Shown piece after piece: positions 6,701 to 52,451 of a DNA stretch of 64,000 nt. Numbering within the stretch: position 1 is the stretch's first letter; every line of letters begins with the position of its first letter. The stretch lies in NCBI GenBank assembly GCA_038496445.1, contig JALMLS010000064.1:558001-622000 (forward strand), in the 5' to 3' direction. A model generated the notes under the pieces. That model ran no database searches and was not told the origin of the DNA. It was given only the letters and a program-made list of their open reading frames with translations. The DNA is from Trichosphaerium sp. ATCC 40318. Its lineage: Eukaryota; Protista; Tubulinea. Made by a program: the position numbers and the translations under genes.

Positions 6701-9700
6701 ACTGACGGCTTTATTAGCTATGAAAGCAGCTGTAAGAGATGGCGTCGAGTTGAAGAGTAAATTCGCTGATATGAAAGTATTGGGTTCTCCTATCGCTCGC
6801 GACATTTCACAAGGCGTTGAACTCAAGAGCAAGTTCGCTGACTATCCAGCACTCGCTACACGTAAGTTTTGCTCTTATTTTCTTATTATCAATTGCAAGC
6901 TACTCTTTTGACACTTTTTTAATCTAGCAATGAAAGCAGCTGTAAGAGGTGGTGTTGAGTTGAAGAGTAAATACGCTGATATGAAAGTATTGGAATCACC
7001 TGTTGCTCATAATATCAGACGAGGAGTTGAACTTAAGAGCAAGTTCGCTGGATACAAAACACAACCATCACGTAAGTTAATTTACAACGACCTTGTTCTT
7101 CACTTAAAAACTGCATTATCAAACGCTTATACTCTTGTTTTAGACCTTGTCCGTCAGTTAGCTACTGGTGTTGAGTTGAAGAGTAAATTCGCTGGATTAC
7201 CTACCCTTAATACACGTACGTACCGGTAAAGCTAATGTTCTCTTTCGTGAAGATTACATAGTCTTACTTTTTTGCTTTAGCTATGAAGAAGGCTGTGAAA
7301 GGCGGTGTTCAGTTGACAAGCAAGTTTGCTGATCTTCCTACACTTCAAACACGTACGTACTCTATCTCTGACATACTCTTTGACTCACCTTTTATTAGCA
7401 ATGAAGAAAGCTGTACAAGGCGGTGTTCAATTGAAAAGCAAATTCTCTGATTTACCTACACTTGCTACACGTACGTGCTAAACTAGTTGTAATCTTATCT
7501 GTAATATTCTTTGAGCACAATTCGTCTAATCATTCTTTGCTTAGCAATGAAGAAAGCAGTCCAAGATGGCGTCCAATTGACAAGTAAATTCGCTGATCTC
7601 CCAACCCTTCAAACACGTGAGTACTTGTATTCTGTTTTGTTTGTTGCAGAGGCGTTTGTCTGACTTTCTTTTCTAGCTATGAAACAAGCTGTTCAACAAG
7701 GTGTTCAATTGACAAGCAAGTTCGCAGGTCTTCCTACACTTGATACACGTAAGCACTAAATTCGTGTTTGTTCTGTATTGCACATCGGTCTAACTTCACC
7801 TCGTAGCAATGAAAAGAGCTGTCCAAGATGGTGTTCAATTGACCAGTAAATTCGCTGGCCTTCCAACCCTTCAAACACGTGAGTATTGTATTCCTATTTG
7901 GTTATTGTAACCTTAGTCTTACTTTCGTTTAGCAATGAAGAAAGCTGTACAAGAAGGCGTTCAATTGACGAGCAAGTTCGCTAGTCTTCCTACTCTTAAC
8001 CAAGAGCTTAAGGATAGCGTACACCAAGGCACCTCGCTTAAACCTGTTCCTGTTCAAGAGGAGCCAGTTGTTGAGCAACAAGAAACAGAAACAACACAAG
8101 ATGCTGCTGAAGAAGGTTCGTGATATATATTTTTTTTTTGCTTTCGATTTCTTTTTCTTTTGTTTCGAGGACTATTGCTGTTTCCTTTGTTCTTTTGATG
8201 AGTTAGCATACGCTTACTAATTACTAGATGCTGAACTTGTCAATTTCGCAGAGGAGCCTAAACAAGAGATGGATACTGAGGTTATTGAGTCTCAAGAAAT
8301 CGAAGAATTTTCTCCTGTCGATGAAATTGATTTTGTTCATGATGCTGTTTCTGTTGTTGATGAAACACCTGAGATGGATGAGATTGAAATGATGTCTGTT
8401 TTTGATGACGAGGACGTGGAAGGAATTGAAGATTTCATCGATGAGATCCTTGACTCTGATGATGAAGCCGAGTTGGCTGATTCTTCTCTTGATGTGAACC
8501 TTAGTGATATTGAGGACGAAGATGAGGATGTATATGCTTCTTTATACTCTGTAGATGATGTTGAAAGCGTCATTGAAGAGTTGTCTGTTGCTATCCAAGT
8601 TGTTGAAGAAGCATCAACTGAACTTGTCGAAGAAGAAGAAATCATACATGATGTTGTTGAAGACGTTACCGAAGACCTTGACACTGCTGAAGAAGTTGCC
8701 GAAGACGTTGCTGATATTACCGAAGCCCTTGTTGAAAGTGTTGTTGAAGACGTTGCTGAGGATGTTGTCGAAGACATTGTTGAAGACACTATTGAAGACG
8801 TTGTTGAAGACGCTGCTGAAGACGCTGCTGAAGACATCACCGACGAGGTTGCTGAAGACATTGCTGAAGACGTTGTTGAAGATGTTGAAGATGTCGTTGA
8901 AGATGTTATTGAAGACATTGCCGAAGACGCTGCTGAAGACAATGTCGAAGAGGTTGCTGAAGACATTGCTGAAGACGTTGCTGAAGACATTGTTGAAGAC
9001 ATTGCTGAAGACGTTGTTGAAGATGGTGTTGAAGACGCTGCTGAAGACGTTGAGGATGTTGTTGAAGACGCTGCTGAAGACGTTGTAGAGGACATTGTTG
9101 AAGTTGCTGGTGAAGAAAACGAAGAGGTTATTGTGGAACAAGACATTGCTGAAGCGATTGAAGCTACTGAGGTGGTTGAACCACAAGAAGAAGCATGTGC
9201 TGAAATCGAAGATTCTGTTGAAGATGCTAGCCCTATTCTTGACGAACCTGCAGCAGAAATCCAAGAAGCAGTTGTCTCCGAACCAGAAGAAGAACCAGAA
9301 CAAGAAATTGAAATCGAAGAAACCAGGACGATCGAACCTGAAGCTCTTGCTGAAGATACTGCTGAACATGGAGCCGAATTCGATGAGGTTGAAGAAGAAC
9401 CACAACAACAAGAAGTCATTGACGTTGAGCCAGAAGAGGAAGTAGCTGAAGATAATCCTGTCGAAGAAGACGAAGAAGCAGAAGCTTCCTCTGGAAGCGA
9501 AAGCGGATCTAGTCAAGAAAATGACGAAGAACCTGTTGAACCTGAGGTTACTCCTATACCATCAGAGGAAACTAACGATGTCGACCCTGACGTTGAAGAG
9601 AAGAACGTTGCTGAAGATGAAACAGAAGAACCTGTACGTCCTTTTTTTTTGAAGTCTTTGAAACAAAGATTTTCTGACTTGTTTTTCTAGAAACGTGTTC

Positions 9701-10548: not shown

Positions 10549-11520
10549 ATGGGTGCAGCTCAACCTAAAGAGGAACGCGTTCTGGAACGCAGTATACTTC
10601 CGTTCGTGCCACCAGAGATACTGACAGATATTCTGCGTTATTTAAACAAAAAACAGCGTATTGAAGCTTCAGTGGTATCTCATCAATTTAATGACATCAT
10701 ACGTGGCCGTATTGGCATTTATTATTTAGAGTTAGAAGAATCATCAGATTGTCGTGTTTTAAAAGGCAGTCCATTGCTTAAAAACACTATTATTTCATTC
10801 CCAATGATTGTTACTGGCTTAATTAATGCTTCAATTTCAATATCGAAAAGCGACTTTGCTTGTCTTTATGGTGTCCACACGATAGATCTTTCATGGGTTA
10901 AGGTTGACTTTCGACCGATTGATGATGAAGCTATCCTCTTATTACTGGAAAAGACTACAAGGAACTATACTGGTTTTTTAGGTAAGAGAGAAATACCTAA
11001 GTCAGTAAAAGATGGACAACCTAAAATTGATCGTAAATGGTATGGATTGTTTTCTGATGTTTCTGAAAAACACACAATCCATACCATTATTTTTTGTAGT
11101 GCTCTTATTACAGATAAAGGTGCTAAATCATTGGCTGGCGTACACACAATAAAGTTGCGACAGTGTCCTAAAATAACAGATGAGGGTATTATGGCGTTGT
11201 CTGGTGTACACACTATAGAGTTGCATCGTTGTGCTAAAGTAACAGATGAGGGCATTATAGCATTGTCTGGCGTACACACAATAACATTGATCGACTGTAC
11301 AATAACGGATAAGGGTATTATGGCGTTGGCTGGTGTACACAGAATAAAGTTGGTCAGTTGCCATAAAATAACAGATGAGGGTATTATGGCGTTGTCTGGT
11401 GTACACACAATAGAATTGCTTCTTTGTCATGAAATAACAGCTGATGGTGTTAAGGCATTAAAAGATAAAAGAAGATTCACTCACAGTGATGAACAACTAA
11501 GGGCAGTACATAGAAATTAA
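10549..11520 (+). CDS. Intronless F-box + LRR protein (ITDEGIxALxGVHTI repeats)
   Basis: F-box LPFVPPEILTDILRYL...; five to six 22-23-aa LRRs; 323-aa uninterrupted ORF. Confidence 0.85.
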   Translation: MGAAQPKEERVLERSILPFVPPEILTDILRYLNKKQRIEASVVSHQFNDIIRGRIGIYYLELEESSDCRVLKGSPLLKNTIISFPMIVTGLINASISISKSDFACLYGVHTIDLSWVKVDFRPIDDEAILLLLEKTTRNYTGFLGKREIPKSVKDGQPKIDRKWYGLFSDVSEKHTIHTIIFCSALITDKGAKSLAGVHTIKLRQCPKITDEGIMALSGVHTIELHRCAKVTDEGIIALSGVHTITLIDCTITDKGIMALAGVHRIKLVSCHKITDEGIMALSGVHTIELLLCHEITADGVKALKDKRRFTHSDEQLRAVHRN

Positions 11521-18017: not shown

Positions 18018-19668
18018 TTACAACCTCACAATTATTTTTAAGGAAGGGTTTTTTTGTCTCATTTGTTCTATATGTGATCCGTGTAACATTGGTCTGATTA
18101 ACTCAAGAGTACGTAAATTTGGTAACTCACATATCCTACCCACGTTATTAATAACCGTTGAACACATGTCACGTAGTGACGTTCAATGAAACTGTCAAAA
18201 AAAAACTCAAACGTACTTATGAACAATATTCTCATGCATCGGGAACAGCAATGAGATATCTTGTAAGTTTACTAACCAACTTGCTATACAATTCAAGACT
18301 CTTGACCTATTTCCATGATACCGTGAACCGAACTAGAATAGTTATGTTTAGCAAGAGATTAAACAGTCATCAGCTAAGTAAGGATGATATTACGTACGCG
18401 AAGGTTAAGATACGTGAGTTGAGTCATTTGTTTTAATTGAGAAACAATACAATGTTTGCTATTAATAAGCACAGAAAGAGATTTCAAGTATGTCAATGTT
18501 TCCAAGTTCGAAATATGACATGAACTTAAACTAAGAGACGAAATATCGAGTGTATTCAAAGGAGCCAAATCAATTACATTCACATTATAACCAGAAACGA
18601 TATTGACATCCTACATACAAAAGAAAAGTAAGTTCCTCACCTACAAAATAAATGCCAAGGGTTGTACCATTTGATGAGATACAGGAGTAATCTGACGTAT
18701 AAAACAAGGTGGAATGATGACTTCTCCAGGGCTCAGTATATTGTAGTCTTCTGGTGATGATATAGCTATAGCCATCCTGTTAAGGTTCGGTAGGTTCTCT
18801 AAGTATAGTGGAACATCGGCAGGAACCCAAGCGGTAGAACATTGAAGTGATTCAAGTGTAGTAAAACGGCATAGATGTTCAAGTTCCTCATAATGTACAG
18901 ATGAAATACTGAGTTCTTTTAAACTAGGAAGATTTGGAAATGTACTGATTCTATTAGAAGCAATCCGTAATCGTGTCAAGTTAGGTGCGGCAGGAATATA
19001 TTCACAAGATTTTGTAGAAATTTCCAAACTGTGCAATCCAGTTAATAAACGTAATTCTGGTGGTACAGGTAGCCCATTGGTTATAGATAAGTGTCTTAAT
19101 GACTTTACTAGGTTACAATACTTAGGTATAAGTACTGGTGTTTGTAATCTAAACCTCTGAAAGTGAGAAAAAAGAAATGGATTGAAAAGCACATCCAAAA
19201 AAAAATTGCGTGCCGTTTCAAGTTTGGTTTACTCCGCAATAAAGCTTCTACAAGATATCTAGATAACTCAAATCCCATGCCATGAACTGATATAGATATT
19301 ATAGAGTGTTCATTGACAAATTGCTTGGTCTTAGCGAGTACAGGAGATGAAAAATTCTCAACTTGACCGTAATGAATTGCAAAGTTGGGTGTAATATGAA
19401 TTGAAAGCTCTTGTAAGTGACGGAAAATGCGACTGGGTATGATAGTTTGATGAGCTAACTTAATAGCGAGAGCTTTAACGTGTTTATCCGTTATTTTAAG
19501 CCATCTTCTTGAAACAGCGCTCAAACATCTACGTAGCGTTGGCGGTACCCGTTCTATTATTTCTGATAGTGTTTCGTTGGGTAATGTCGAGAAAAACGTA
19601 TTTGGCGTTGAAATAATTGGTAACGCCTCCTTTGCGCGTCGCGCTCCCATTGTATTATGCATAAACAT
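18018..19668 (-). CDS. F-box + LRR protein, multi-exon
   Basis: FSTLPNETLSEIIERV...LSAVSRRW F-box; LxxLxL repeats; last exon ICELPNLRTLEL...IIVRL*. Confidence 0.75.
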
Positions 19669-32837: not shown

Positions 32838-33959
32838 TCAAAAGAAACTGAAGCGTTCTATATTCGTCTTTTTACCATTGACATAGACACACTTCTCCTT
32901 CAATCCACCAGTTTTACGCCACCTCTTGTACTCTCCTTCTCGTTCTCCATTAACAAAATAGTACTGCTCTTTTAATTGCCCATTTCTATGCCAAGTCTTA
33001 CCCTCACCTTCTAATTTACGATTGACACAATAGTACTGCTGTTCTAATTGCCCATTGTCATACCACGCCTTGTACTCTCCTACTTGTTCGCCATTAACAA
33101 AATAGTACTGCTCTATTAAATGCCCGTTTTCATTCCAATACTTGTACTCTCCATCTCGTTTACCATTTACATAATAGTACTGCTCCTTCAATTGATTGTT
33201 GTCATGCCATAGCTTACACTCTCCATGATTCAAATCATTGACATAATATTCCCGACTTGCTAATTCCCCAGTATCTATGTTATAGAGTTCGCATACTCCA
33301 TTTTTTTTATCAGTAGTGTAGTAACACTTGCTCCATAATTTGCCGTTGTCATAGTAATCCTTGTATTCACCTTCTTTGTTGCCATTCTTGTAGTTAATTT
33401 GTTCTTTAAGTTTACCGTTGTAAGCCCAGATAGTACATTCTCCATGTAGCTCCCCATGTACATAATAACTATCCTCTCGTATTTGTCCGCCTGAATACCA
33501 ACCTTGATACTTTCCGTGTTTCTTGCCGTTGACATAGTTGCACTTTTCGTTTATTGCACCATCTAGATACCATCTCACGTACGATCCTTCTTTTTTACCT
33601 TTGACACAATAATACTGTTTGTGCAATTTACGGCGGCAATAGATGTTTTGTTCTCCTTCCCGCAACCCACCAACGTAAAAGTGTTGCTTCTGCAGTTTGC
33701 CAGTATAGCTCCACAACTTGTGTTCTCCGTCTTGTACACCGTTTTTCCAATGTACTTGCTCTATCACAAGGTCGTATTTGCTTTTTTTATTCCACTTCCC
33801 ATGTTTGTTCATCTCGCTATCAAACCTTGTGGTTATTGCCGCTTCTTTAGATAAAAGAGGCCAAATTAAATATGCTCTAAAGTCTAGGTCGATTATGTAA
33901 AGCTGTATCTCCTTTGGAAGGATCAATAAGCCATTACTGTACTCTGTTGAAGTATTCAT
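32838..33959 (-). CDS. Intronless F-box-like + MORN-variant (MORN_2) repeat protein
   Basis: LLILPKEIQLYIIDLD N-terminus, then about 12 24-aa repeats of type GEYKxWYDNGQLxEQYYYVNGK. Confidence 0.85.
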   Translation of the reverse strand: MNTSTEYSNGLLILPKEIQLYIIDLDFRAYLIWPLLSKEAAITTRFDSEMNKHGKWNKKSKYDLVIEQVHWKNGVQDGEHKLWSYTGKLQKQHFYVGGLREGEQNIYCRRKLHKQYYCVKGKKEGSYVRWYLDGAINEKCNYVNGKKHGKYQGWYSGGQIREDSYYVHGELHGECTIWAYNGKLKEQINYKNGNKEGEYKDYYDNGKLWSKCYYTTDKKNGVCELYNIDTGELASREYYVNDLNHGECKLWHDNNQLKEQYYYVNGKRDGEYKYWNENGHLIEQYYFVNGEQVGEYKAWYDNGQLEQQYYCVNRKLEGEGKTWHRNGQLKEQYYFVNGEREGEYKRWRKTGGLKEKCVYVNGKKTNIERFSFF

Positions 33960-47700: not shown

Positions 47701-48873
47701 CAAGGATGATTTACTCCTTGCTGATGACCCAGCTGTAGTACCTTCTACAATTAAACAGAACGCCAAGCTAAGAGAAGAAGATGTCTTCAGGGTATGACAA
47801 TATTCTTTTTTTTTCCTTCAAAAATGATACGCTTCTTGCTCATGTTTCTCTTTAGATTGCTATGGAGAGATACACATTATCTTCTGTAAAAATTGCTCAG
47901 TACAGGAACGAAGAAAAGGTGGAGCAATTAGCGCGCCTCCAAAGTACCACTAGGCCTGATTTTACAGCTATAAAAAAGAGATGCAACGACTTGGGTACAC
48001 GTGCTTACGCAAATAAACCAGTTTGTCTAACTATTTTTTTGAAGTGTCTCAAGAAGAACTTGAAAGCATGTACACAAAATTTGAAGGTCTAGCTGGTGGT
48101 TCTAATATAAAAGGTTTTGCAATCAATGCGGAGAGCTTTGAGCAACTTGGTATTGAATTAAAAAAATATGACTTTAATGGTTTCTTACTTTTTTCTTCTT
48201 TAGCTAGTTACTATGTGCCTGGTGTAACTCACCCTGAAATTGATTCACATGAGTTCATTGATAGAGTTTTTAGGGTATGATATATTCTATTTTATTAACA
48301 TAGACTTTCACTAACACTTTGTTCTGTAGACTGTAGATAGTTCAAATCAACAACAAATAAGTTTCGAAGAATTTGTTGCTTGTATTACAATTTTAAAGCA
48401 TGGCTCTGCTGAGATGAAGCTTAACTGTGCGTAATAGGTTTATTGTTAAGAACTCAGATACTTATGTTTATTTTATAGTATTTCTTACACTGTACTTTGA
48501 ACGTGGTGAAAAGATAACAGAAGCAGAATTCGCTTTACTTCTACATAAAATGTATAGGTAACAACTTTCTGAACAACCTTGATGTTTATGTTACAACCTA
48601 ACCTACTCAAACTTTAGAGTTACAATGGCAAGACATATTGACCATATCACAAACATGAAGAAGATAAGAGTAAGTTCTTTGCGGCTTTTTTTTGACTTTT
48701 TTGTGAACTTGGTTTTTTTTGACGATCTGAAGGTGTTTGCGTTCAACATTTTCGAAAACAAAGACAGTATGAGTATGGAGGAACTCCATGAGAAGTTACT
48801 TAAACAGAGTAATATAGTGTCGCTATGGAATTCACTTGTAGTCACAGATCCAGATACAGCACCGTCAGAATAG
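44723..48873 (+). CDS. TBC1D9: TBC1D8/TBC1D9-like Rab-GAP (GRAM-GRAM-TBC-EF-hand)
   Basis: MWTIP..LW N-terminus, GRAM-like exons, [43 protein letters not shown]-hand-like ISFEEFV. Confidence 0.85.
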
Positions 48874-49174
48874 TAACTTTTAAAAAAAAACAAACCAATA
48901 AATTATTTGTAAAATGTTTCCACGTCGTTGTACCTCTGTTGTGTGGGTATTAAATAGATATACCTCACAACCATTGGTAGCTATCGATTTGAATGTACAG
49001 ACTTGCAGTGGGTACGAACCTTGTTTGTCAATTACTACCTGCTCCTATGACATCTCATTGGCATCCTTAGAAGGCAGCCGTGGTAGATTGTTGAGATATA
49101 GAATGACAACATTCTTATATCAAAGTATTGTTTTATTCGAATCAACCCTAGCTCTCTACATTTTTGAATAATGT

Positions 49175-50526
49175 TCAATTTAAAGATATTTTGTCCATAT
49201 CACTTTCAAGGGAGAGTTCCTTGATGAAGGGCATATACTTGAGTTTGCGAAATGGAGACCCCTCCAAAAACTGTTCGACAGCCTCCCAAGATTGGTTTTC
49301 TCTGCGTTCATACCAGAACTAGTGTACTTGTAAATATGGTTCAATCACCACCTGAATTACCTTTCTTATTGCCTCTTTTGCGAAATCTCTTTCCATTGCA
49401 GTTTGCTCCTTCATGTTTGGCTTAGGTACGTCGCCAGGCTCAAATAGTCGTTCGTTAAATTTGATGCAATTGTTGACAAAACCAGTTGCATGTTTCCACA
49501 TACATCTTTTCATTTCCTTTAATCCCTGCGTGTGAAGTATTAGAAATATGTTTATAAAGAAAACATGAAATCACCTTTAGATGTTTGGTGATAAAAACAA
49601 GATGATAGCGCAAGTTGTTGCCTTTGTCAATGATGGCGAATTTGGTAGTGAAAATCGGAAGAAAACAATCTTCTTTTACTCTCTTCAAAAATATCTCTGC
49701 CAACTTATTAATGCGCTCTTTTGGAGTTTGCTCATCTAGGTATTCATCCAGGAAAGGTAGTTTCTCTGGGGCCGTTTCGGGGTTTCGGTACAGTAGTCTC
49801 ACTAAGGATTGTTTCTAGGGTTGTTATTTTGGACCAAGAAAAGTTGGTATCACATTTACCTTATTTTCCTCTTTGCGGAATCTATTTATGAATCCAGACA
49901 TAAGGTTGATAAGAACATCTGAGCTCTTGTGACTTTCCAAAATTTTGCAAACGAGGTCCATTGAAATTTGCGACCATCCAAATGGATCCAAGAAAACAAA
50001 ACGGGGAAGGTCTTCCAACTTTTTGTGATTAACCAGAGTAGCAACTTTGTCTTCACAAGTTCCTTGAATTAATTTGACCTACGTATGTTATTTGTTAGTC
50101 AATCAATACTATACGAATACGTACTTGAATATTTATTGTATGATCTTTTTTGTTGGGCTTGCTTTCTAACTTCCAAGTGCGCGGTTTGCCATTCGAAGTA
50201 TCACTCTTGGCCGGCGCTGCCTTTCGTAGCACAGTTTCAAGCTTCGTAATTACCTTGCTGTCCTTCTCAATCAGAAAAAAGAGAATAGTGTCAATGTTGG
50301 TATAAAATTTATTCTGTTGAGCGACGTTAACGGCTTCAACAGCAGCGCCTGGAATTATTATGTTGTTGTACTCGAATTCGCCTGCACCAGCGAACCCATC
50401 AATATATATGACTCCTTTAGAATAGCTACCGAGGATAGGGAAAAAAGCGCCACAGTAGTCACGAATAATATGACCCTTAACTATTTGTCGTATTTTTACG
50501 CTACGGTTGTCTTTCTTTTCGGCCAT
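49175..50526 (-). CDS. tcmP: TcmP (three-Cys-motif partner)/GMT-wHTH-like SAM-dependent methyltransferase with spliceosomal introns
   Basis: VKGHIIRDY, YIDGFAGAG, FFLIEKD, FVFLDPFGW, DVLINLMSGFINRF, YHLVFITKH.KG..EMKRCMWK and a wHTH-like SPFRK..Y..IKEL. At least four GT-AG introns; 3' end uncertain. Confidence 0.8.
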
Positions 50527-50947
50527 TTGTAAATTATGAATATTAAGGACCTGTAGCGAGGAACTGAACGCGTGTTGACAATTACTTTTCTGTTAACGGC
50601 AAAATCAGTGAAATTGATTAGAGCCTTGATTGACTAAAAAATGTGCTTAGACCTATGCGCAGTATGGTTTTGCGCTACTGTTCGGCAACGTTGAATTGAA
50701 CTTGAATAGAGCACGATTGGCTAAACAATGCTGTTTTCTGTAAAAATGTTGTACAAAAGGCTTCCAATAACAACAGATTTCTAAGAAATAACAGGCACCT
50801 AATTTTGCGAACTGAGCGCAAACCTGGCCATTCACGTTGCATTACCGTTTACAAAACTTCAATCATAGCTCCTTTATTTTCTATTGCGTACCATTCGAAC
50901 TACGTTTTTTGTCCAGAAAAACAAATTGGAATATGTTAAGGTATTCA

Positions 50948-52451
50948 TTAGAGGTAAGGTATACCTATGCGATACTGACCCAAAGAGTATTCAATAAGAT
51001 AGTCCAGGTAATCAACACAACGAGCATGTAAACAACCGTCAGCAGTCTCATAATGCTCCCTATGAGGAGGGATGCATTTTTCAACAGCATAAAGGTTTTT
51101 CAATGATAGAATAGCTTCATCTGTAATTTGGTCACAGTTTTTAAGACCAATTGTATGAACACCTGATAATGCTTTGACACCTTCATCTGTCACTGAGGTA
51201 CTATCAAGATTAATAGCGTAGACACCTGCAAGTACTTTAATACCTTCATCTGTCACTGAAGTATGAGCAAGATCAATAGCATGCACACCTGTGAGTGCTT
51301 TAATACCTTCATCTGTCACTGCAGTATCACCAAGGTGAATAGTGTGAACGCCCTTTAACCATTTTATACCTTCATCTGTAACTGATGTAGTTTTAAGAAA
51401 TACAATATGAGCACCTGTTAATGCTTTGATACCTTCATCTGTCACTGCAGTTCTATCAAGATAAATAGTATGAACTCCTTCCAGTTCTTTTACGCCCTCA
51501 TCTGTCACAGGAGTGTCAGTGAGATTAATAGTATGAACACCCTTTAATGACTTGATACCTTCATCAGTAATATTCATACAATTGCTTAGGTCAATAGTAT
51601 GAACTCCTGCAAGTGCTTTGAGTCCGTTATCTGTCACCAATGTGTATGTAAGATCAATTTTATGTACACCTTTCAATGCCTTGATACCTTCATCTGTGAT
51701 TGAAGTACAACGATAAAGACAAATAGAATGTACTCCTGCAAGTGATTTCAGATCACGATCATTGATAACTCCAGATACACGATATAGCTTTGGGTTTCTT
51801 TTGAAAGAAGTATCAATGTATCTACAGCCAGATAACAATGAATACAAAGTATTATTTTGAACATTCATAACAATGACACTGTTGTTCATGATACCATTGT
51901 ACTGTCTGATCTTTAGAATATCTGGAATATCATAAATGTACACTCTTTGATATCCAACAATGTCATGGATGATATCAGCCATCAAACGACATGATTGAGC
52001 AACAGCGAATCTTGATTTCGCTTCTGTATGACTTAGAATTGTTGATATCACTTCTGGTGGGAAATTGATGATATTAACTACCTTGTGTGGACTCAACTCT
52101 GTCCTGTGTTATTGTTAATAAACATATCTTTGTACTTTATTGGACGTACTTTCTCATTTGCTTGTGTTTTGGAACCGATATGTCCTCAGGTTGCGTCATG
52201 GGCTTGTTGGATGACTCTACTGCAATAGAATCCATTGTGGGCTGTTTCGCCAAGATAGAGCCTGTTCCAGTACTTTTGAAGAGGTATTGGTCGAGTTGTT
52301 GTAAAAGGGTCTTGTTTGCAACGTTTAAGATATTTTTCAGTTGATCTATGAACACTTGGCGTTGTTTTGTACTTATTCTACTGAACTCTTCTCTGTGGCT
52401 GTTACGATAGTATGTGACTGCTTGCTCGACTGAAACACCTGGTAGATTCAT
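50948..52451 (-). CDS. F-box + LRR protein (VTDEGIKALxGVHTI repeats), paralog of 10549-11520
   Basis: ORF 52137-52451 joins the LRR ORF through intron 52104-52149 (GTACGT...ACAG, phase 2). F-box FPPEVISTILSH; about 10 LRRs in one exon. Confidence 0.85.

Follow-up and report, generated by a model that had tools for sequence, protein, structure and literature searches.

The 64-kb window analyzed here (64,000 nucleotides (nt) of contig JALMLS010000064.1 from Trichosphaerium sp. ATCC 40318) contains a gene for a protein of the TcmP family, NCBIfam TIGR04474. The gene is on the minus strand at positions 50526..49175. It is probably an intron-bearing nuclear gene of the amoeba that was acquired horizontally and that encodes a divergent TcmP protein. 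On the sequence evidence, the gene is real and stand-alone, and it is of prokaryotic or prokaryotic-virus origin. The family is known but uncharacterised, and this eukaryotic member of it is highly divergent and comes from a genome rich in foreign genes.

The coding region starts with an ATG at position 50526 and ends with a TGA stop at 49177–49175. The five exons join to form a spliced open reading frame (ORF) of 1170 nt, which is translated to an intact protein of 389 amino acids (aa). A preliminary description of this locus had given the coordinates 49175–50526, which are exact, and had proposed at least four GT-AG introns. There are exactly four, and their lengths are 46, 45, 49 and 42 nt. 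All four are GT-AG introns in phase 0, with a GC content of 29–36%. Three of the four have in-frame stops, and the 49-nt intron 3 would shift the reading frame if retained. The features of the gene, in the order of transcription, are as follows.

Exon 1, positions 50125..50526, minus strand: 134 codons; the start ATG, the N-terminal helix with the invariant K17, the S-adenosylmethionine (SAM)-binding motif I YIDGFAGAG, and IEKD.
Intron 1, positions 50079..50124, minus strand: 46 nt, GT..AG, phase 0, with an in-frame stop; no coverage by RNA contigs.
Exon 2, positions 49860..50078, minus strand: 73 codons; motif IV FVFLDPFG (catalytic-type D-P-F-G) and LINLMSGFINRF.
Intron 2, positions 49815..49859, minus strand: 45 nt, GT..AG, phase 0, with in-frame stops; homology continues past the junction.
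Exon 3, positions 49575..49814, minus strand: 80 codons; a helical insert region, then the strand YHLVFITKHLK.
Intron 3, positions 49526..49574, minus strand: 49 nt, GT..AG, phase 0; a length not divisible by 3.
Exon 4, positions 49361..49525, minus strand: 55 codons; the GLKEMKRCMWK helix and the linker to the C-terminal domain.
Intron 4, positions 49319..49360, minus strand: 42 nt, GT..AG, phase 0, with an in-frame stop; removal is seen in contigs.
Exon 5, positions 49175..49318, minus strand: 47 codons and the TGA; the helical part of the C-terminal winged helix-turn-helix (wHTH)-like domain.
3' untranslated region (UTR), positions 49125..49174, minus strand: at least 50 nt; a contig from the run termed X2 below continues unspliced to 49125.

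All four junctions restore collinear homology to the TcmP family consensus. The sequence at the intron 1 junction, NIQ/VKLIQG, aligns with the family strand NFKIEVING, and that at the intron 3 junction, KHLK/GLKEMKRCMWK, aligns with the consensus NLKGLEKMKEAMWK. The motif YHLVFITKHLKGLKEMKRCMW is restored only after removal of intron 3. This motif and the others listed in the preliminary description (K17..I..Y24, YIDGFAGAG, IEKD, FLDPFG and INRF) are all present in the spliced protein. Alignment to the family also reveals two inserts, a Lys/Ala/Pro-rich loop of approximately 24 aa encoded at the 3' end of exon 1, just before intron 1, and a segment of approximately 12 aa at the start of exon 3. 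An alternative donor for intron 1, AAG/GTAATT at 50254/50253, was rejected in favor of 50125/50124, as its use would remove the conserved helix VITKLETVL, including the invariant L96.

The assignment to TcmP, as made in the preliminary description, is supported by profile comparisons. Exon 1 matches TIGR04474 with 50 bits (profile positions 5–99), exon 2 with 44.1 bits (104–174) and exon 3 with 13.9 bits (200–249), and the three matches are collinear. The curated cut-off of this profile is 53 bits for a whole protein; each exon alone is below it and the sum is approximately 108 bits. A hidden Markov model (HMM) was built from 142 prokaryotic and viral TcmP members, with the amoeba protein excluded. 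The spliced protein scores 194.9 bits against it (E 1.2e-61) as a single domain over HMM positions 16–317, and this score and the collinear exon matches place it in the family. A scan of the six frames of the window with the same HMM matches these exons only, with 34 bits for exon 3 and 16 bits for exon 4. This, together with the collinear TIGR04474 matches, excludes a chance similarity. Two PADLOC models from candidate defence systems also match, PDC-M41A with exon 1 (1.1e-09) and PDC-M30A with exon 2 (1.6e-09). Pfam has no match for any of the five exons, and searches of PHROGs, and of PDB sequences using either exon 1 or the family profile, gave chance-level matches only. No TcmP paralogue was found in the window by tblastn or HMM.

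Evidence for splicing comes from the contigs of four public sequencing runs, which were compared with positions 48600–51200 of the window. Two runs are informative, one from 2015 (X1) and one from 2023 and a different study (X2). A contig of X1 joins 49199–49318 directly to 49361–49488, and a contig of X2 joins 49125–49318 to 49361–49394, both with 0 mismatches and with intron 4 absent exactly. The joint at 49318/49361 reads CT..AC on the plus strand and is present in one contig in each of the two runs. There is no unspliced copy among the matching contigs of the four runs in this interval. A small plus-strand gene at 48615–48905, directly downstream of the TcmP gene, shows expression and splicing as well: in X1 and X2 contigs, 48669 is joined to 48733 and a 63-nt GT..AG intron is gone. 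The simplest explanation for intron-less contigs at two neighboring genes is complementary DNA. A further X2 contig, whose flanks are unlike the window, aligns upstream of the TcmP start at 50655–50759 with 8 mismatches and 1 gap. The match may come from a dispersed repeat or from an intergenic element that is paralogous.

The relatives of the protein are archaeal, bacterial or viral in every case where they are named or could be placed. An exhaustive phmmer search of 1.84 billion cluster representatives with exon 1 gives 109 matches at E <=1e-3. Neither a close relative nor the amoeba protein itself is among these representatives. The top match, P0001 (a 1731-aa repeat protein, E 4.8e-31), was not accepted as kin; its 28 matches are all to residues 83–121, i.e., the helix and the Lys/Ala/Pro-rich loop, and are regarded as low-complexity or repeat matches. 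The best true match is P0002, from a Cenarchaeum metagenome-assembled genome, with 41% identity over residues 17–107. Identities of 50–57% are reached by two fragments only (69 and 98 aa), within the conserved residues 16–55. Named members of the clusters are bacterial TcmP proteins from Desulfofundulus and Thermoanaerobacter. Over the full length, identity to the best relatives is 30–31%. A scan of 185,579 species genomes with two peptide patterns yielded 560 stretches that were confirmed as relatives of the query. The prokaryotic and viral proteins, e.g., P0002 and WP_121450795.1 from Desulfofundulus salinus, are similar in length to the amoeba protein (approximately 365 vs 389 aa). Features in common are the N-terminal helix with its invariant Lys, DGFAGxG, DPFG, the block Y.L.F.T....GL..MK.AMWK and, in the C-terminal domain, the helical part. 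The amoeba gene differs in being eukaryotic, in its four introns and two loop inserts, in having approximately 20 fewer C-terminal residues, and in the lack of an adjacent DUF5131 gene.

A maximum likelihood tree of 61 rows was computed under LG+C20+F+G4 with posterior mean site frequencies. The amoeba protein pairs with P0061 (support 88/96), a metagenomic protein whose ORF, on a contig of 1.3 kb, has no introns. Both are found inside a starred set of 30 rows (support 99/96), of which 16 are archaeal, 1 is bacterial and 13 are unlabelled; the archaeal and bacterial rows are mainly Nitrososphaerota and Bathyarchaeota, and viral contigs are also in the set. A TcmP subclade dominated by Nitrososphaerota, Bathyarchaeota and their viruses is thus tentatively the best-supported source. 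Within the tree, a TcmP of a Woeseiaceae bacterium is the sister of one from a Nitrosopumilus archaeon (L037/L038, support 100/99), and three viral contigs from IMG/VR are almost identical to a gene of Bathyarchaeota (L005–L007/L030). These two observations point to recent exchange of TcmP genes across domains and between viruses and their hosts. The horizontal origin proposed in the preliminary description, for which a phylogeny with prokaryotic homologs had been suggested, agrees with these results. The gene has introns, at least one of which is removed, it has eukaryotic neighbors, and its nearest relatives in the libraries searched are non-eukaryotic. The Trichosphaerium genome paper reports non-eukaryotic best matches for 26% of gene models and only 19 archaeal candidates for lateral gene transfer, of which the TACK group accounts for 47% (PMC10521059). 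TcmP and DUF5131 are not mentioned in the supplements of that paper (PMC10521059).

Conservation was assessed by comparison with the 142 members (143 aligned rows with the amoeba protein). Six columns are 100% invariant and all six residues are kept in the amoeba protein: K17, D43, G47, L96, D165 and G168. Among the motifs, the protein keeps the Lys of helix 1, YIDGFAGAG, IEKD with its acidic E87, FLDPFG and the block Y.L.F.T....G...MK..M. Of 52 columns that are conserved at >=85%, 31 are matched, which is the third-lowest value of the 143 rows. This proportion is approximately twice the overall identity, which argues for selection on the catalytic core. The term domesticated is reasonable, if provisional, for the amoeba TcmP in view of its introns, open frame, spliced product and kept core.

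TcmP is predicted to be a class-I Rossmann SAM methyltransferase with a fold closest to that of RlmJ, the Escherichia coli methyltransferase of 23S rRNA that forms N6-methyladenosine (m6A) at position 2030 (m6A2030; PF04378; PDB 4blv and 2oo3). The fold comparison was made on an AlphaFold model of the homologue P0002, from a 13-sequence alignment, and not on the amoeba protein. This model has a predicted local distance difference test score of 84 and a predicted template modelling score of 0.83. It displays a long N-terminal helix, a Rossmann methyltransferase core and a C-terminal domain of three helices and two strands. RlmJ from E. coli and a Legionella homologue are ranked at the top by Foldseek. 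In VIA-align, the RlmJ family matches end to end (model residues 2–279 vs chain residues 1–277) with Z scores of 16.7 and 16.0 over 208–212 residues and a root mean square deviation of 3.1–3.4. The nearest cluster with a Pfam assignment in the Atlas features is also RlmJ (0.79), which is a lead only. The TcmP motif I, Y-I-D-G-F-A-G-x-G-x-Y, resembles Y-L-D-T-H-A-G-A-G-R-Y of RlmJ. RlmJ activity requires the helix-1 Lys K18 and the Asp of D164-P-P-Y; these two residues hold the adenine N6 in position and deprotonate it (PMC3814359). From their places in sequence order, the invariant Lys of TcmP, in H-T-x-A-K-H of helix 1, and its D-P-F-G would correspond to K18 and D164. TcmP is on this basis taken to be a probable amino-group (N6-A type) methyltransferase of nucleic acid. 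TcmP differs from RlmJ in having DPFG in place of DPPY and an additional C-terminal wHTH-like domain.

Trm1, a tRNA methyltransferase that forms N2,N2-dimethylguanosine at position 26 (m2,2G26; PDB 3axs and 2ejt), is also a class-I fold match. Its Z scores of 13.8–14.5 over 220–228 residues are lower than those of RlmJ, there is no sequence match, and the C-terminal domains are unlike. Motif IV of Trm1 is also D-P-F-G, and this enzyme also methylates an exocyclic amino group. By comparison with RlmJ, the amoeba protein most likely still binds SAM and would methylate a base of RNA or DNA at an exocyclic amino nitrogen (adenine N6 type). Since motif I, the helix-1 Lys and D-P-F-G are kept, the amoeba copy is probably still active. 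The more specific proposal, that it is an active amino-group methyltransferase of nucleic acid, is a reasonable possibility to which slightly less than an even chance is given. The changed residues of the N-terminal helix and the shorter C-terminal domain suggest an altered substrate or an altered mode of recognition.

DUF5131 (PF07505, the Gp37/Gp68 three-Cys protein) is a frequent, though not a universal, neighbor of TcmP. This agrees with the background given in the preliminary description. It lies in the flank in 44 of the 80 genome loci, a set ranked by similarity to an archaeal query, and in 14 of 20 viral loci. It adjoins P0002 and P0066, and P0117 is in an integrative element that does not have it. 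In the amoeba window no DUF5131 is found, as had been noted; the best tblastn match has an E value of 0.25, and an unfiltered search of the six frames with an HMM of 60 partner proteins has a best E value of 0.44. The amoeba TcmP would act without the three-Cys partner that is found beside over half of its prokaryotic relatives. A more elaborate proposal is that a component of a conflict module, TcmP with DUF5131, was adopted as a stand-alone enzyme that would write an m6A-like mark on nucleic acid of the amoeba or of giant viruses. This is unlikely, and the new DNA/RNA-modification or antiviral role suggested in the preliminary description is speculative.

The use of a homologue for the fold comparison is one of several points that weigh against the reading of this gene as an expressed, acquired and functional methyltransferase. 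RlmJ is only about 2 Z above generic class-I methyltransferases, which score 13–14. By hhalign, the similarity to RlmJ is confined to motif I (VVYIDGFAGPGVY vs FLYLDTHAGAGRY) with a probability of 5.6%, and with no Pfam match and no PDB sequence match the protein is not a member of the RlmJ sequence profile. The literature searched contains no data on activity, cofactor binding or substrate for any TcmP protein; TcmP appears there only as a neighbor of the Hna defence gene and in prophages. The probable RNA contigs cover exons 4 and 5 and the 3' UTR only, and neither X1 nor X2 is on record as RNA (the type of X1 is a guess and X2 is unclassified). Exons 1–3 are not covered. The splicing that the preliminary description had proposed to check by RNA sequencing is thus seen for intron 4, in two runs, and introns 1–3 are derived from homology and splice signals alone. 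The terminal branch of the amoeba protein is 3.5, approximately six times the median of 0.59. Because of this long branch and the ranking of the genome loci by an archaeal query, the placement in the tree is tentative and the evidence for a particular donor is weak.

The residues that have changed also weigh on this side. Replacements are found at 21 of the 52 strongly conserved positions, and include H13R, T14Q, H18G, L21I, W28F, P48A, Y51F, S61A, P62A, F142C, E188D and others. Several of these residues are near-invariant in the family (94–99%): H13, T14, H18, W28, S61-P62, Y51 and E188 are R, Q, G, F, A-A, F and D in the amoeba protein. H13R, T14Q and H18G adjoin the key Lys. The last approximately 20 residues of the family (R.R...YP.G..I.F), including the final strand, are missing, and the amoeba C-terminus aligns with the helical part of the wHTH-like domain. 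Exons 4 and 5 have no Pfam match at E values up to 1, including the GMT-like wHTH PF22560. This profile is patchy among the homologues: P0117 and P0088 match with 30 bits (cut-off 27), P0061 and P0022 are below the cut-off and P0002 and P0007 have no match. The GMT-wHTH part of the name used in the preliminary description is provisional. With the altered residues near the Lys and the shortened C-terminal domain, the activity could be impaired or retargeted.

The long branch and the replaced residues suggest that the protein may be catalytically impaired or drifting, and the strongest alternative follows from this. The gene may be a transcribed but decaying relic, or may encode an enzymatically dead protein that only binds, having lost its partner and original role; it would then be drifting, with a reading frame that is open by chance. 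The changes at the key Lys and in the near-invariant G-S-P, the C-terminal truncation, the two loop inserts and the lack of DUF5131 in the window are consistent with decay, as are the low contig depth and the assembly of only the 3' part from RNA. However, 389 codons are open in a gene of 37–40% GC, despite time for the gain of four introns and for divergence to 30% identity, and four canonical pairs of splice sites are present. The six invariant columns and the SAM and catalytic motifs are maintained well above the overall identity. The lack of a partner is also common among prokaryotic members, where 36 of 80 loci have no adjacent DUF5131. A relic is a minority possibility, of about one chance in a few, and a maintained gene of horizontal origin is preferred.

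A second alternative concerns the route of entry. The gene could have arrived by insertion of a giant virus (Nucleocytoviricota) as part of a virus-derived block. F-box/leucine-rich repeat (LRR) and MORN genes dominate the window, and such genes in Trichosphaerium have been ascribed mostly to giant viruses (PMC10521059). The TcmP family is also present on viral contigs. However, the 20 IMG/VR loci are on contigs of 10–102 kb, as is typical for phages and archaeal viruses, and some are nearly identical to Bathyarchaeota genes. All 20 matches have identities of <=38% over most of exon 1, and the two matches of 50% span residues 16–49 only. A tblastn search of GenBank phages with exon 1 gave no match, and no hallmark gene of giant viruses is seen beside the locus. 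Arrival with a giant virus is therefore improbable. Contamination by, or mis-assembly of, a bacterial or archaeal fragment would fit the exclusively prokaryotic or viral relatives but is refuted by four spliceosomal introns that break the reading frame, the removal of intron 4 in two independent runs, the proximity of an F-box/LRR gene (420 nt away) and of a second spliced gene, and a gene GC content (0.40) within the range of the window. The earlier statement that this is a host nuclear gene therefore holds, the gene being located among intron-bearing F-box/LRR genes and its spliced form being present in both runs.

The surroundings of the gene fit the published Trichosphaerium genome. The F-box/LRR gene upstream of TcmP is at 50948–52096, and the neighbors in the window consist of F-box/LRR, MORN and pentatricopeptide repeat genes and a tRNA-Cys gene. 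F-box/LRR genes and one MORN-repeat gene are located at 10549–11520, 18641–19668, 32838–33959 and 50948–52096, and their abundance agrees with the expansion of F-box and MORN genes reported for Trichosphaerium (PMC10521059). The GC content of the window is approximately 0.37, and that of the published draft genome is 37.69% (PMC10521059). The short introns in the window also agree with those of the draft genome (PMC10521059). An ORF of 473 aa at 8269–9690 lies where the GC content of the window is highest (0.42); it has a weak match to Prominin, below the cut-off, and is overlapped by long ORFs on the opposite strand.

There is a precedent for this type of acquisition. The N4-cytosine methyltransferase N4CMT of bdelloid rotifers is a bacterial DNA methyltransferase that has been domesticated by eukaryotes. 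In both cases a methyltransferase of prokaryotic or viral type has become an intron-bearing, expressed nuclear gene; the amoeba TcmP differs in that it is not fused to a chromatin reader and in that its source family is uncharacterised. Since 26% of Trichosphaerium gene models match non-eukaryotic proteins (PMC10521059), one more transfer is not surprising in itself. The significance is rather in the family. TcmP is widespread in prokaryotes and viruses, and matches to models of candidate anti-phage defence systems have been described above. An open, intron-containing and expressed eukaryotic copy without DUF5131 represents a natural experiment, and indicates that the methyltransferase can be useful alone. 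The amoeba TcmP is thus a simple, single-protein target from which to learn what the family methylates. If the mark-writing reading is true, the gene would represent a new base-modification or antiviral activity in eukaryotes, with recognition retuned through the N-terminal helix and the shortened wHTH-like domain. For the amoeba itself, the gene is one more foreign-derived candidate for the writing of marks on nucleic acids.

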